64,000 bases of DNA, from the sequence record NC_048016.1; one strand, given 5' to 3'. Shown piece by piece: positions 1,976 to 4,922 of this stretch. The notes under the pieces are model-generated. The model had not been told where the DNA came from. It saw only the letters and a list, made by a program, of their open reading frames with translations, and made no database searches. The position numbers were made by a program, and so were the translations under genes. Within the stretch, counting starts at the first letter, position 1. Each line of letters begins with the position of its first letter.

Positions 1976-2051
1976 GCAGGCATAGCTCAGTTGGTAGAGC
2001 ATCTGATTTCCAATCAGAGGGTCGTCAGTTCGAACCTGACTGTCTGCTCCA
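1976..2051 (+). tRNA. tRNA-Gly(TCC)
   Basis: Acceptor GCAGGCA/TGTCTGC, anticodon arm TCTGA-TTTCCAA-TCAGA, T-loop TTCGAAC, U73, encoded CCA. Confidence 0.96.
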
Positions 2052-2150
2052 GAAATGTAATTACAGGTTTACACTGTATTATGTACAAGACATGTGCGCT
2101 TAGCTAAACTGTTGCAAAAATAACAGGTTATCTCAGTACATATGTGCAAT

Positions 2151-2233
2151 GGTTGTGTCACGTTGGCGTGAGTTGGGTTTACGGCAGGCAAACGGACGTA
2201 AGCTCTTCGTGGTTCAATTCCACAGCACAGCCC
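2151..2233 (+). ncRNA. tRNA-like RNA without a canonical anticodon arm
   Basis: Acceptor GGTTGTG/CACAGCC, D-like TCACG-TTGG-CGTGA, T-arm GTGG-TTCAATT-CCAC. A 9-bp stem with a 13-nt loop replaces the anticodon arm. No CCA. Confidence 0.6.
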
Positions 2234-2255
2234 TCTTGTTATGTAAAAGAATTCT

Positions 2256-2340
2256 GGCGGGTTACTCAAGCGGCAACGAGAGCAGACTGTAAATCTGTTG
2301 ACTTCGGTCTTCGGTGGTTCGAGTCCACCACACGCCACCA
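2256..2340 (+). tRNA. tRNA-Tyr(GTA)
   Basis: Anticodon arm GCAGA-CTGTAAA-TCTGT, long variable arm, TTCGAGT, CCA. G5-A68 mismatch in the acceptor. Confidence 0.94.
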
Positions 2341-2345
2341 GTTAT

Positions 2346-2420
2346 ACACCCATCGTCTAGCGGTTAGGACCGCTGCCTTTCGAGCAGTTAACCGGGGTTC
2401 AAATCCCCGTGGGTGTACCA
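2346..2420 (+). tRNA. tRNA-Glu(TTC) copy 1
   Basis: Acceptor ACACCCA/TGGGTGT, anticodon arm GCTGC-CTTTCGA-GCAGT, CCA. Confidence 0.93.
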
Positions 2421-2423
2421 AAC

Positions 2424-2499
2424 ATTCCCGTCATCTAGTTGGTAAGGATACGACACTTTCACTGTCGGTACACGAGTTCGAGTCTCGTCGGGAATACCA
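2424..2499 (+). tRNA. tRNA-Glu(TTC) copy 2
   Basis: Acceptor ATTCCCG/CGGGAAT, anticodon arm CGACA-CTTTCAC-TGTCG, CCA. Confidence 0.94.
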
Positions 2500-2509
2500 A
2501 ACACAAGAC

Positions 2510-2601
2510 CGTAACCCTGCGGTGTGGTTAGTCGCCACTACTAGCGGTTACGCGATGCCCACTGCTGCGGGGTGTGTGATAGTGAGGTGGTTGACCCCAC
2601 C
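2510..2601 (+). ncRNA. Structured inter-tRNA element with two T-arm-like hairpins
   Basis: CGTAACC/GGTTACG helix enclosing GTGG-TTAGTCG-CCAC, plus GGTGG-TTGACC-CCACC. Confidence 0.4.
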
Positions 2602-2622
2602 AAGCGAGCAGCGAGCAATTTT

Positions 2623-2698
2623 AGGGAAGTAGTTCAATTGGTAGAGCGTCGGTCTCCAAAACCGGTTGTTGGAGGTTCGAGTCCTCTCTTCCCTGCCA
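2623..2698 (+). tRNA. tRNA-Trp(CCA)
   Basis: Acceptor AGGGAAG/CTTCCCT, anticodon arm TCGGT-CTCCAAA-ACCGG, G73, CCA. Confidence 0.96.
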
Positions 2699-2704
2699 AA
2701 CAGT

Positions 2705-2781
2705 AGGACTGTAGCTCAGACGGTTAGAGTGCCGCCCTGTCACGGCGGAGGTCGCGGGTTCGAAACCCGTCAGTCCTGCCA
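2705..2781 (+). tRNA. tRNA-Asp(GTC)
   Basis: Acceptor AGGACTG/CAGTCCT, anticodon arm CCGCC-CTGTCAC-GGCGG, CCA. Confidence 0.96.
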
Positions 2782-2786
2782 TATCT

Positions 2787-2876
2787 GGAGAATTGGATGA
2801 GTGGCTTAAGTCGCTCCCCTGCTAAGGGAGTGTATCCGAAAGGGTACCGTTGGTTCGAATCCAACATTCTCCGCCA
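2787..2876 (+). tRNA. tRNA-Ser(GCT)
   Basis: Acceptor GGAGAAT/ATTCTCC, anticodon arm CTCCC-CTGCTAA-GGGAG, long variable arm, CCA. Confidence 0.96.
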
Positions 2877-2882
2877 TTACAA

Positions 2883-3038
2883 TGACACCCGCACCTCAAA
2901 ACCCTGGGTATTGCACCCAGAAAAAGAGTGCTGGCAGCCAATAAAGGCATCCGTTAGTAACCGTAGCCTTCGGGCGTAGATGGTGAAGACCGCCAAGTGC
3001 AGCCTTTAGAACTCCGTGGGATTCGGAGGGGTGTCACC
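2883..3038 (+). ncRNA. ~155-nt tRNA-framed structured RNA
   Basis: Terminal stem TGACACCC/GGGTGTCA stacked on CTCCG-TGGGATT-CGGAG. Internal helices CTGGGT/ACCCAG, TAAAGGC/GCCTTTA and GCC-TTCG-GGC. Confidence 0.65.
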
Positions 3039-3064
3039 TACACACGTTAAAAGGATCATCCTCC

Positions 3065-3160
3065 TTGGGCGAAACCAATGGGCGCGCGGGGTGTATAGTC
3101 TGGGGCAAAGCAATCCCAGATGAGTCGTCTGACGTTAACTCGTCAGGGGGCAAGCGGCCA
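3065..3160 (+). ncRNA. Second structured domain between tRNA-Ser and the pseudo-tRNA
   Basis: Hairpins TTGG-GCGAAA-CCAA, TCTGGG/CCCAGA and CTGACG-TTAACT-CGTCAG; ends in GGCCA. Confidence 0.4.
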
Positions 3161-3169
3161 CACAATTTC

Positions 3170-3245
3170 TCAACGGTAAGCAAAACTGTGATGCACTGTG
3201 CTCGCGAACAGATTAGGTGGGTTAGAATCCCATAACCGTTGACCC
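3170..3245 (+). pseudogene. Degenerate tRNA or tRNA-like element, identity unassignable
   Basis: TCAACGGT/ACCGTTGA acceptor, T-arm GTGGG-TTAGAAT-CCCAT, CTGT/ACAG stem with 8-nt loop GCTCGCGA. D-loop lacks GG; ends in CCC. Confidence 0.6.
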
Positions 3246-3251
3246 TTTTAT

Positions 3252-3327
3252 TGGTGATTAGTTCAGTCGGTAGAACAGTGGACTGTTAATCCATATGTCG
3301 CAGGTTCGATTCCTGCATCACCAGCCA
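3252..3327 (+). tRNA. tRNA-Asn(GTT)
   Basis: Acceptor TGGTGAT/ATCACCA, anticodon arm GTGGA-CTGTTAA-TCCAT, CCA. Confidence 0.96.
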
Positions 3328-3332
3328 CCTTT

Positions 3333-3757
3333 GCTCTGAGATAACTGTGAATGGCATTCCGGAAAAATTTCATTCAACCTAACACGTGCGGTCGTCTCAG
3401 CGCAAAACCCTTTCGGGATAGTGAACCCTGCAGACCGGTGTGCTTGCATATCGGGTGTCCGCTATCCCGGACCTAATACAGACAGAAGCCGAATAGGTTT
3501 TTCTACTGCACATACGCCCAGAGCCATTACGGGCTTTTGTCTGTACCAAATAGGGCATGGAGAGAGGTTGGTGATAATAGGCCGCCCTGTCTGTGTCCGT
3601 CCCCGTTTGTCGGGTAGGTAGTTCGCTTCCCCCCAAGGATGCTAGCTGTGTCAGCCTGCCCGGCAATCCAAATTAGCGCGCTTGCTAATGAGTGTCTGAA
3701 CCTGACCCGTCGGATACTGCCCAGGTAGTTAGAAAGACTTCGACCACACCAGGGTAC
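3333..3757 (+). ncRNA. Candidate ~430-450-nt multi-domain structured ncRNA
   Basis: No credible CDS. 14-bp helix 3477-3490/3532-3545, CGGGATAG/CTATCCCG, CTGAGA/TCTCAG, GTGTCCG/CGGATAC, GGGTAGG/CCTGCCC. Confidence 0.62.
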
Positions 3758-3798
3758 CCCCTCTCCGTTTTGGAGAGGGGAATACTCTATTTTATTTC
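3758..3798 (+). terminator. Terminator closing the RNA island
   Basis: CCCCTCTCC-GTTTT-GGAGAGGGG followed by an AT/U-rich tail. Confidence 0.7.
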
Positions 3799-3802
3799 GG
3801 AT

Positions 3803-3819
3803 AGATATTATCTCTGTGA
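3803..3819 (+). promoter_or_regulatory. Putative early promoter motif AGATATTAT-N5-TGA
   Basis: One of 8 copies of the motif in the window. Confidence 0.7.
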
Positions 3820-3866: not shown

Positions 3867-4922
3867 ATGAAAAATCGTCACTTCAGTAATACCCGCAACG
3901 GTGCACCTAAGATTGATGCACTGAGCAGCTTGCAAGGCTTAGGCTACACAGCACTCCAGGCAAAGAATATTCGCATGTGGCTTCCTCGCCAGTTCGGCAT
4001 GGGTGGTCTGGCATTACCTCGGGCTAACTACGAGTTCTGGAAAGCCTACGAGATTGTCAAGGACATGCAGCAGTACCGCAAGACCAATGCCCTCTCTTTA
4101 CAATTCGCGGGCTACGCAAAGGGCCGTACCGTATTCCAGTTCACGGATAACGAGTTCTTGGAGTACCGCAGTCCGACACTGCACTCAACGGTGTGGTCAT
4201 TGGAGTTTGTGCGTCACTTTGGTAACGGCCTGTGGCGTAGTAGCACGGATGCCTTTGAAGGTGGTCCACGCCAGCTTGAGTACATCGGGGATAACCTGCG
4301 TTTGAAGCGTGGCGAGTTGGCAACCCGTATCGTGGAGATGGAAGCCACACAGACGGTGTACGACCTTAACGCAGACGGCGGCTACTTACCCCGTAACCTC
4401 GAACGCTACACCGAGAACGCGCGTGAGTCCATCGCTACGCTGTTCACCATGGCAGCGGTGTGTCACAGTAACCTGACGCTGAAAAGCGGCTGGAACCTCA
4501 ACCCAGAGCGTCTGTGTTTCACCAAGTACCAGCACTGCGATTCACATCGCTTAGCGTTTGCCATCGGTAAACTCTGTGAGCTTTACCCACAGAAGGAGCA
4601 GTCGATTCGCAGTCACGTGATTCGGATTATGCAGACCCCGAACCACATTCAACTGATGAACGATGACTTTATCCCCGGGGTGTATCATGAAGGTGGAAAC
4701 GTACTCGCGGTGGAACAACCAAATTTCGTTCTCAGTCCCGCCGGGAGTTTTATTCCGAGTGCCTTACAAGGAAGTCTGCCTGCCTTCTTTGTGAACCTAC
4801 CTTTCGCGTACGGGCCAAGCACCACCATCAACAAGCCGATGTTGTTTGTACCGAAAGAGTTGCGGGACGCCCACACCGAAGAAGAGTGGATTCTCGGTGC
4901 TCGCTTGTTCTTTAAACTGTAA
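3867..4922 (+). CDS. Hypothetical protein (351 aa)
   Basis: Long ORF bounded by the promoter motif and a terminator; no family recognised. Confidence 0.9.
   Translation: MKNRHFSNTRNGAPKIDALSSLQGLGYTALQAKNIRMWLPRQFGMGGLALPRANYEFWKAYEIVKDMQQYRKTNALSLQFAGYAKGRTVFQFTDNEFLEYRSPTLHSTVWSLEFVRHFGNGLWRSSTDAFEGGPRQLEYIGDNLRLKRGELATRIVEMEATQTVYDLNADGGYLPRNLERYTENARESIATLFTMAAVCHSNLTLKSGWNLNPERLCFTKYQHCDSHRLAFAIGKLCELYPQKEQSIRSHVIRIMQTPNHIQLMNDDFIPGVYHEGGNVLAVEQPNFVLSPAGSFIPSALQGSLPAFFVNLPFAYGPSTTINKPMLFVPKELRDAHTEEEWILGARLFFKL

Follow-up and report, generated by a model that had tools for sequence, protein, structure and literature searches.

A hairpin-chain RNA downstream of the tRNA genes of Erwinia phage Wellington: a probable new RNA family of SPN3US-like jumbo phages

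Introduction

What is specified by the interval between the last transfer RNA (tRNA) gene of Erwinia phage Wellington and gp14 (3867-4922), for which the genome record of this phage carries no annotation? We addressed this question in a window of 64 kb (64,000 nucleotides [nt] of record NC_048016.1) that is identical in sequence to positions 1-64000 of the Wellington genome (MH426724; 244,950 bp; genus Wellingtonvirus); all coordinates refer to this window. A preliminary description, made from the DNA letters, had proposed a structured RNA of four domains at 3333-3780, located between tRNA-Asn and a terminator. Our analysis upholds a discrete RNA, transcribed from the + strand, that is non-coding and heavily structured; it shifts the limits of this RNA to about 3328-3797 and replaces the four domains by seven or eight hairpin modules that fold independently. 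It is very probable that this stretch of about 470 nt is a real RNA whose structure is under selection. The best reading of the sequence comparisons is that it represents a previously undescribed family with a hairpin-chain architecture that is present in SPN3US-like jumbo phages of Enterobacterales.

Results

The RNA extends from tRNA-Asn to an intrinsic terminator

The RNA locus adjoins the tRNA genes of a lytic jumbo phage, a setting shared with the GOLLD and ROOL RNAs, and runs from the 3′ end of tRNA-Asn to an intrinsic terminator. The tRNA genes and the parts of the RNA are as follows (bp, base pairs):

1976-3327, + strand: array of eight tRNA genes (ARAGORN and Rfam), tRNA-Asn being the last
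3252-3327, + strand: tRNA-Asn(GUU) (ARAGORN and Rfam, 73.5 bits), CCA encoded
3330-3406, + strand: module A; helix P1 (3330-3348/3388-3406) and apical hairpin (3349-3358/3366-3375) with the loop CCGGAAA
3412-3471, + strand: module B; outer 12-bp helix (3412-3423/3460-3471) and inner hairpin (3430-3442/3447-3458)
3477-3545, + strand: module C; 14-bp helix (3477-3490/3532-3545) enclosing an inner helix and internal loops
3553-3598, + strand: module D; lineage-specific hairpin with 17 predicted pairs, five of them G-U
3607-3666, + strand: module E1; outer helix (3607-3619/3654-3666) and inner hairpin (3620-3630/3637-3647)
3672-3689, + strand: module E2a; 6-bp hairpin AUUAGC/GCUAAU with a variable loop
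3691-3718, + strand: module E2b; 9-bp hairpin in Wellington, apical loop ACCUGACCCG with a family-wide ...ACCC... motif
3724-3750, + strand: small hairpin region, GUUAGAA/UUCGAC; weakly predicted, of uncertain structure and poorly aligned among homologues
3751-3797, + strand: intrinsic terminator; stem CCCCUCUCC/GGAGAGGGG (3758-3766/3772-3780) and U-tract AUUUUAUUU (3789-3797)

Helix P1 starts 3 nt past the CCA of tRNA-Asn, and no promoter motif was found between the two. Since there is no space for a promoter in front of P1, the RNA would most simply be the 3′ trailer of the tRNA operon transcript.

Five Wellington-type versions of the element were available for comparison: those of Wellington, of Kwan (97% identical to Wellington), of pEa_SNUABM_11, and of two IMG/VR phages, one of 248 kb (loci L010, L071 and L072) and one of 239.5 kb (L037/L078; referred to as L078 hereafter). 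The terminator at 3751-3797 combines a GC-rich stem-loop with a U-tract, and its stem is maintained in the relatives. The 9-bp stem consists of seven G-C and two A-U pairs and is extended by 6 bp between AGGGUA (3751-3756) and UACUCU (3783-3788), for which L078 has AGGGAA/UUCUCU; compensatory changes affect 4 of the 15 pairs, with 97% of the alignment cells paired. An equivalent hairpin followed by a T-run occurs in other genera as well. A simple terminator scan missed this structure because the U-tract starts 9 nt past the inner stem. Presumably, the terminator forms the 3′ end of the RNA.

For the + strand of 3328-3790, the predicted folding energy is -178.8 kcal/mol, compared with -144.1 +/- 6.0 kcal/mol for dinucleotide shuffles (z -5.8; none of 100 shuffles was as good), while the - strand of the same stretch reaches a z of only -1.4. 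Strand-specific folding excess extends to L078 (z -4.3) and Asesino (z -7.1), which carry divergent homologues. In the Wellington fold, 24 of the 148 predicted pairs (16%) are G-U, and when the five Wellington-type versions were folded separately by energy minimization, one and the same order of domains emerged.

Most helices are maintained by compensatory substitutions

The preliminary description had named conservation of the helices as a point on which its proposal would stand or fall. Covariation analysis showed that most of the helices it listed are compensated in the four other Wellington-type versions. In the shuffle comparisons reported below, none of 500 shuffles was as good as the alignment of module C, of the E1-to-terminator region or of module A; these counts are indicative and not to be read as probabilities, because the sets are small and the sequences related. 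In all three cases, covariation also surpassed that of controls in which the structure was slid along the alignment.

The 14-bp helix of module C had been predicted at exactly the position at which we found it, and the covariation seen across seven phages from three lineages supports the module: 91.2% of the alignment cells are paired, compared with 82.2% in shuffles, and 8 of 21 pairs have changed on both sides, while the slid controls gave 22-48%. The inner helix GGUUU(U)/(A)GAGCC is invariant; it comprises five pairs in the seven-phage consensus, to which the minimum-energy fold of Wellington adds a sixth (3496-3501/3520-3525). A covariance model of module C (R1) scored 66-93 bits on the + strand, compared with at most 22 bits on the - strand.

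Module A was aligned family-wide in ten sequences from which the Wellington-type versions were excluded (alignment A6). In this alignment, 93.5% of the cells are paired (87.7% in shuffles), and 8 of 20 pairs have changed on both sides. The apex of the module (3349-3389; 41 nt) shows no differences between Wellington and pEa_SNUABM_11, despite a wholly different P1 stem (CUGAGAU/GUCUCAG in Wellington; UGGGACAAUCA/UGAUUGUUCCA in pEa_SNUABM_11). When modules A and B were considered together in Wellington, Kwan and L078, 8 of 49 pairs were found to be changed on both sides. In both modules A and C, the substitution paths pass through G-U intermediates, and module C contains invariant G-U pairs.

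The pairing of CGGGAUAG with CUAUCCCG around a hairpin, which had also been proposed earlier, turned out to be part of the 12-bp outer helix of module B, which encloses the hairpin 3430-3442/3447-3458. Comparison of Wellington, Kwan and L078 revealed U-A to C-G and G-C to A-U exchanges in this outer helix, and the inner stem of L078 has a different, still complementary sequence; the unpaired stretches UGAACCCUGCA and GUGUCCG of module B are conserved. The structure of module D is a thermodynamic prediction only, because independent homologues are absent.

From E1 to the terminator, 94.5% of the cells are paired in an alignment of five phages (89.2% in shuffles), and 10 of 52 pairs have changed on both sides. 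The outer helix of E1 contains the pairing of CGGGUAGG with CCUGCCCG that the first reading of the sequence had picked out. Its strands, which we read and registered by hand in three phages, are GUCGGGUAGG/CCUGCCCGGC in Wellington, GUCAGUCAGG/CCUGACUGGC in pEa_SNUABM_11 and GCAGGUCGG/CCGACCCGC in L078; the block GCUGUGUCAGCC of E1 is conserved. E2a carries two compensatory pairs in Caitlin and ChrisDB (AUCAAC/GUUGAU); since this hairpin lacks any G-U pair, it cannot on its own distinguish an RNA hairpin from a DNA palindrome. E2b is two-tiered in the relatives, with an internal loop on the 3′ side (e.g., UGCCUGA or UGCCCA). Five kinds of inner stem (UCUGA/UCGGA, GGGA/UCCC, GAGGA/UCCUC, GGAG/CUCC and GACGA/UCGUC) and six different outer stems, each fully complementary, were found; their registration was set by hand, as the alignment produced by MAFFT did not agree with the structure. 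Directly downstream of the small hairpin at 3724-3750 lies the conserved sequence CACCAGGG.

The RNA is conserved to the same degree as the neighboring tRNA

Between Wellington and pEa_SNUABM_11, nucleotide identity amounts to 79% in module A, 88% in module C and 80% in tRNA-Asn, while the flanking genes gp14 and gp15 are 62% and 66% identical at the nucleotide level (gp14, 52% at the amino acid level). Hence, the conservation of the RNA matches that of the neighboring tRNA and exceeds that of the flanking protein genes. Unpaired blocks that are invariant comprise the CCGGAAA loop of module A, GGUUUUU and GAGCC in module C, UGUCAG in E1 and UGACCC in E2b. The notion that loops are generally more conserved than stems had to be rejected: among Wellington, pEa_SNUABM_11 and L078, 61% of the paired columns are invariant as compared with 44% of the unpaired columns, so that loop conservation is limited to particular blocks.

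Modules are gained and lost among related jumbo phages

About 50 SPN3US-like jumbo phages have a homologue of gp14 behind their tRNA array. Module A is positioned directly after tRNA-Asn in members of the genera Machinavirus, Erskinevirus and Seoulvirus and in an additional IMG/VR phage (L084), and it starts 1-5 nt past the 3′ end of a tRNA (or tRNA-like) sequence in all relatives examined. A covariance model built from alignment A6, and hence trained without any Wellington-type sequence, recovered Wellington 3326-3413 (21.5 bits, E 0.03). The module A model matched all 12 phage loci searched from other genera, and blastn alone detected module A beside tRNA-Asn in 22 phage records. Outside the Wellington-type versions, module C is present in SPN3US, Proteus phage 7, pEa_SNUABM_29 and L084; it is found in L078 as well. 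E2a and E2b occur in every genus examined.

The remaining modules have a patchier distribution. Wellington, Kwan and L078 have module B, which pEa_SNUABM_11 and the IMG/VR 248-kb phage lack. Neither pEa_SNUABM_11 nor L078 has module D, in whose place the 248-kb phage carries an unrelated hairpin; in L078, E1 is followed by an additional hairpin. As judged from these sequences, modules A, C, E2a and E2b are common to several genera, whereas B, D and E1 are subject to gain and loss. A metagenome scan with a module C pattern for further Wellington-type variants returned only already-known sequences and chance matches. Likewise, scanning 185,579 species genomes for the gp14 family, in search of prophage or bacterial copies, revealed no relative, an absence that fits strictly lytic phages.

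Three Machinaviruses carry a second copy of module A (49-63 bits): Huxley (L019 2022-2097), pEa_SNUABM_10 (L023 2868-2943) and pSal-SNUABM-04 (L027 2929-3005). In each case, the copy is located inside the tRNA array upstream of tRNA-Asp and is preceded by what appears to be the remainder of a decayed tRNA (T-arm and acceptor 3′ strand), an arrangement that suggests joint duplication of a tRNA and module A as a single unit. In pEa_SNUABM_11, the interval between tRNA-Asn and module A contains about 120 extra nt (L002 2354-2475) with fragments resembling tRNA halves (a GGTTCGAATCC T-loop and a GTAGCTCAGAGCGGTCTAGAGC D-arm), which appear to be remnants of lost tRNA genes.

A protein gene is embedded in the RNA of some relatives

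In Seoulvirus, Machinavirus and L084, a coding sequence (CDS) of about 160-270 codons is inserted between the 5′ modules and E2a/E2b, with E2a placed directly past its stop codon. The product resembles SPN3US gp4 and contains no known domain. This CDS is lacking in the Wellington-type phages, in L078 and in the Erskineviruses (Asesino, Stratton/phiEaH2, L082), all of which have one continuous RNA of 330-470 nt. When gp4-like proteins and those of other syntenic genes were compared by tblastn with Wellington, pEa_SNUABM_11 and the IMG/VR 248-kb phage, no significant CDS remnant was detected in the element; on the same grounds, we rejected a pseudogene of a syntenic gene. The neighboring genes gave no lead to a function: gp14, gp15, gp16 and SPN3US gp4 are without a Pfam domain and belong only to PHROG families of unknown function, and the gp14 family and gp4 have no relatives in the PDB.

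Several deposited gene calls overlie RNA modules, namely Huxley gp20 (L019 3206-4240), Stratton gp19 (L018 3220-3561) and Asesino gp20 and gp21 (L025 4119-4523). The 5′ end of Huxley gp20 is about 220 nt longer than that of its near-identical pSal-SNUABM-04 homologue, and Stratton gp19 and Asesino gp20 and gp21 are without homologues and of odd composition. The N-terminal extension of Huxley gp20 and the latter three calls are probably annotation artefacts.

The element matches no known RNA family and encodes no protein

A covariance-model scan against Rfam, the check that the preliminary description had suggested, found no family for the element: 3328-3797 gave no match at gathering scores or at E ≤ 10, and homologous regions yielded only tRNAs (14 related loci at gathering scores; four loci at E ≤ 5). 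The GOLLD and ROOL models matched neither 3328-3797 (E ≤ 10) nor the homologues. YrlA, RNase P RNA, tmRNA, 6S RNA and group I and group II introns (Rfam) had no match within the element, be it that of Wellington or those of its homologues; weak YrlA matches among the homologue loci overlie tRNA genes and not the element. Riboswitch and leader families in Rfam were negative, and neither Rfam (E ≤ 10) nor ARAGORN detected a tRNA or decayed tRNA inside 3328-3797.

That the overlapping open reading frames (ORFs) are short, as initially stated, was borne out: the stop-free stretches are not kept in frame among homologues and match between phages only at conserved nucleotides and in differing frames. 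A small protein was rejected, as the ATG at 3351 is missing from most homologues and indels of 68 nt (module B) and 53 nt (module D) shift the frame. Two further candidates were discarded, one being a host-RNA mimic (no blastn match in any of the complete E. coli genomes), and the other a sponge for a CsrA-type protein (eight GGA motifs compared with 6.6 expected, p 0.32, and only two ANGGA).

Alternative and long-range pairings

The preliminary description had further suggested a switch between two mutually exclusive helices. CGGGUAGG (3611-3618) is indeed complementary to CCUGCCCG (3655-3662) and, with one bulge, also to CCUGACCCG (3701-3709), the conserved apical loop of E2b. However, forcing the alternative pairing costs 8.7 kcal/mol, with an equilibrium probability of about 2e-7; the helix 3611-3618/3701-3709 is without covariation, and it comprises only 4-6 bp in a shifted register in pEa_SNUABM_11 and L078 (registered by hand), the very phages in which the E1 helix 3607-3619/3654-3666 covaries. 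No conserved strand that would compete with the terminator as an antiterminator was found. Hence, the two exclusive conserved helices, one of them controlling a terminator or a ribosome-binding site, that characterize a riboswitch or attenuator are not seen here.

A helix between GTGTCCG and CGGATAC, also proposed initially, fared no better. The sequences are complementary (GUGUCCG at 3455 and 3593; CGGAUAC at 3711), but CGGAUAC has a local partner, GUGUCUG (3692), in the minimum-energy fold, and we rejected the long-range pairing because the copy at 3593 lies inside the lineage-specific module D. A tertiary pairing of GGUC in module A with GACC in the loop of E2b was discarded as well; inspection by eye shows that the loop varies (GACC, GGCC, UACC, CACC, AGCC) while GGUC is fixed, and compensation is therefore absent.

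The tRNA array and a promoter-like motif

One further feature lies just past the terminator:

3800-3813, + strand: AT-rich, promoter-like motif GATAGATATTATCT, upstream of gp14 (3867-4922)

With up to three mismatches, this motif has 15 matches in the window, compared with 2.1 expected (none of 100 shuffles reaches 15), and nine of these are on the + strand. The + strand sites located upstream of genes include those at 3800, 7145, 16063, 24200, 25588, 29291 and 57227. The motif is kept upstream of gp14 homologues and other genes in the relatives, and takes the form of GGATATATATTACC or AGATAGATATTACC in related genera. AT-rich motifs are found at early promoters of jumbo phages that encode their own RNA polymerase (PMC7598289), and the virion RNA polymerase may use GATAGATATTATCT as an early promoter. 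The copy at 3800 marks the next transcription unit and lies outside the RNA. The AT-rich sequence AGTTAGTATATATG directly before tRNA-Gly could be the promoter of the tRNA operon.

Two gaps in the array hold tRNA-like sequences. The first (3172-3241) is located in the 375-nt gap between tRNA-Ser and tRNA-Asn (2878-3251; folding z -2.3), scores 20.1 bits with the Rfam tRNA model (cut-off, 29 bits) and was not called by ARAGORN. It has a 7-bp acceptor-like stem (CAACGGU/ACCGUUG), a T-arm (GUGGG-UUAGAAU-CCCAU) and an aberrant D/anticodon region, and its sequence is almost the same in the Erskinevirus-like contig L082 and the IMG/VR 248-kb phage, which speaks for a non-canonical tRNA or tRNA-like RNA that is conserved, and against a fresh pseudogene. 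The second (about 2151-2235), in the gap between tRNA-Gly and tRNA-Tyr (2052-2255; folding z -2.1), was called by neither ARAGORN nor Rfam; its cloverleaf-like fold, with acceptor GGUUGUG/CACAGCC, D-arm, T-arm and an over-long anticodon arm, could be that of a decayed or intron-bearing tRNA.

The tRNA arrays in the window (1976-3327) and in all related loci contain tRNAs for Tyr, Asp and Asn with GUN anticodons throughout, and for His in several relatives. The GUN-anticodon tRNAs for Tyr, Asp, Asn and His form the queuosine-modified set, which is targeted by some anticodon nucleases such as colicin E5. Targeting by anticodon nucleases could bear on the retention of the tRNA array and of the RNA that trails it.

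Discussion

A stable RNA freed from the tRNA operon transcript

How might an RNA of this kind be made, and what might it do? We envision that it would be transcribed as the 3′ trailer of the tRNA operon and that maturation of the 3′ end of tRNA-Asn would create its 5′ end and thereby free it. The base-paired 5′ end (P1) and the terminator hairpin at the 3′ end would then confer stability. In the last and least certain step, the RNA would act in its own right during infection, with the invariant unpaired blocks possibly serving as recognition sites for a protein or RNA partner of phage or host origin, so that the RNA might function as a scaffold or a decoy. We tentatively favor this picture of a stable, end-protected RNA that is released by tRNA-Asn maturation and acts on a partner through its invariant loops, and we put the likelihood that its main role is exerted in trans, rather than as a cis-acting trailer, at slightly below even. 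A bolder version, in which a new class of large modular trans-acting RNA, carried by RNA polymerase-encoding SPN3US-like jumbo phages, binds, sequesters or scaffolds a host or phage factor and would be a functional, genetically tractable counterpart of GOLLD and ROOL in phages of Enterobacterales, strikes us as unlikely. Its target may be a component of RNA decay or of a tRNA-targeting defence, which would fit the Tyr, Asp, Asn and His tRNAs of the array, and the RNA may self-associate via the CCGG of the module A loop; this tetranucleotide is self-complementary, but not conserved family-wide.

Several points weigh against the reading that we favor. Transcription, ends and stability of the RNA are inferred from sequence, and we found no transcriptome for Wellington or SPN3US-like phages that covers the locus. 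The family-wide alignments comprise 5-13 distinct sequences from related phages, so that the shuffle statistics overstate significance, and the stems of E2b were registered by hand. No partner, tertiary contact, pseudoknot or self-association signal could be established, the structure prediction being one of nested secondary structure only. Paired columns are more often invariant than unpaired ones, which restricts loop conservation to particular blocks, and for each of the modules B, C, D and E1 there is a lineage that does without it, a turnover that fits a loosely constrained trailer as well as it fits a functional RNA.

Alternative explanations

These last observations feed into the main competing explanation, a purely cis-acting trailer or cassette of untranslated regions (UTRs) whose hairpins serve only their own transcript. 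Module A would shield the junction behind the tRNA, guide 3′ maturation of tRNA-Asn and give the downstream fragment a paired 5′ end, while E2a, E2b and the terminator would guard the 3′ end; in relatives with a CDS, the two parts would be UTRs that stabilize or tune the gp4-like mRNA, and Wellington would have kept this UTR shell for processing of the tRNA operon and termination. The constant position of module A, including that of the second Machinavirus copy, that of E2a/E2b just upstream of the terminator and directly after the stop codon where a CDS exists, the free gain and loss of modules, and the on average higher conservation of stems are all in keeping with it. We regard a purely cis-acting role as a serious rival, albeit the less probable one, because the 41-nt apex of module A is identical in phages with unrelated P1 stems and neighboring proteins that are about 52% identical, C, E1 and E2b hold unpaired blocks that do not vary from genus to genus, some 400 nt of ornate structure go far beyond the needs of a terminator or stabilizer, and tRNA-like conservation is retained in three CDS-less lineages. 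These CDS-less lineages also bear on the idea that the element is a relic, that is, the leftover UTRs of a lost gp4-like gene drifting without function towards loss. The CDS between the 5′ modules and E2a/E2b of relatives and the loss of modules in some lineages would suit a relic; a conservation equal to that of tRNA-Asn and above that of the flanking genes, compensatory substitutions within CDS-less lineages that attest to continuing selection for pairing, and the retention of RNAs of about 330-470 nt in three such separate lineages, with no CDS remnant detected, make it improbable.

A riboswitch-like or otherwise switching leader, in which 3611-3618 would pair exclusively with 3655-3662 or 3701-3709 in response to a ligand or factor, draws on the fact that Wellington, Kwan and the IMG/VR 248-kb phage all possess the complementarity (8 bp, interrupted by one bulge), that the second partner is a conserved loop, and that the 5′ modules sit in the leader of a CDS in the relatives. 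The energetic cost of the alternative helix, its lack of covariation and its shortness in pEa_SNUABM_11 and L078, together with the covarying E1 helix, a terminator devoid of a competing antiterminator, the missing match to Rfam riboswitch or leader families and the absence of any gene between RNA and terminator in Wellington, leave such a switch very improbable. There is least of all to be said for an element that does not act as RNA. Both E2a and the core of module A, UUCCGGAA or UUCGAA, form perfect palindromes at the DNA level and lack G-U pairs, as one might expect of protein-binding sites or an origin-like region, and a 41-codon ORF starts with the ATG at 3351. Yet the folding excess is confined to the + strand, the 16% G-U pairs would be A-C mismatches on the other strand, and the substitution paths run through G-U intermediates, while the coding alternative founders on the ATG absent from most homologues, the 68- and 53-nt indels and the lack of any ORF kept in frame; a DNA-level element or a small coding gene is thus extremely improbable.

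Relation to known systems

In phage T4, tRNA-Arg, which ends the tRNA operon, precedes rnaD (119 nt) and rnaC (139 nt). These are the species 1 and species 2 RNAs, annotated as small stable RNAs and also shown on a map of the T4 tRNA region (PMC2330249). Like the Wellington RNA, rnaC and rnaD are located directly after the last tRNA of the operon and on the same strand, with spacers of 1-6 nt; rnaD starts 1 nt past tRNA-Arg, and P1 of Wellington 3 nt past the CCA of tRNA-Asn. The presumed biogenesis, tRNA-type processing of one precursor, is the same. By analogy of position, the species 1 and 2 RNAs of T4 would be the closest counterparts of the Wellington RNA. However, they are two separate RNAs, in contrast to the single Wellington unit of about 470 nt, which comprises seven or eight modules and ends in a dedicated terminator, and they are known to accumulate, whereas the Wellington RNA is known here from its sequence. 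Homology to rnaC or rnaD was rejected, as the models of modules C and A (R1 and R2; filters off) matched nothing over the T4 RNAs; no model built from the T4 RNAs was made.

GOLLD and ROOL are large structured RNAs of phages and prophages, of unknown function and often located beside tRNA islands (bioRxiv 10.1101/2024.12.08.627333). The Wellington RNA shares with them the phage origin, the structured nature and the tRNA-island setting. It differs in that GOLLD and ROOL have multi-way junctions and pseudoknots and form RNA-only cages, whereas the prediction for the Wellington RNA is a linear succession of hairpins, and in that frequent gain and loss of modules is a feature of the Wellington family. 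Staphylococcus phage K (Kayvirus) produces abundant long non-coding RNAs beside its tRNA genes, which the authors of that study liken to GOLLD and ROOL by position (PMC9241854). The resemblance to the Wellington RNA, non-coding and tRNA-adjacent, is one of setting; phage K belongs to another phage family with another host, and expression has been shown for phage K only.

A different comparison concerns stability. A helix near a processed 5′ end and a terminator hairpin at the 3′ end are the classic shield against the 5′-end-dependent RNase E and 3′ exonucleases, as in the ompA 5′ UTR. The Wellington RNA resembles such a stabilizer in that P1 starts 3 nt after the tRNA CCA, a terminator hairpin closes the 3′ end, and modules flank a CDS in the relatives; it differs in that Wellington has no CDS to protect and in that sequence-invariant loops and about 400 nt of structure exceed what a stabilizer needs. 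Since the setting beside a tRNA cluster is shared and no model matches, we file the Wellington RNA as a new family within a known kind, the structured RNAs attached to phage tRNA clusters.

Implications

Apparently spurious gene calls overlie the RNA in several deposited genomes, and Rfam does not contain the element, which is of relevance for the annotation of these phages. For decades, large structured RNAs have been recorded next to phage tRNA genes, from species 1 and 2 of T4 to GOLLD, ROOL and the RNAs of phage K, and their function is unexplained. The family described here adds a case that is tractable in the laboratory: its carriers are lytic, culturable phages that infect Erwinia, Salmonella, E. 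coli and Proteus. Its natural variants, with modules deleted, swapped or duplicated and with the CDS present or absent, offer ready comparisons of which parts are dispensable and of action in cis versus action in trans.

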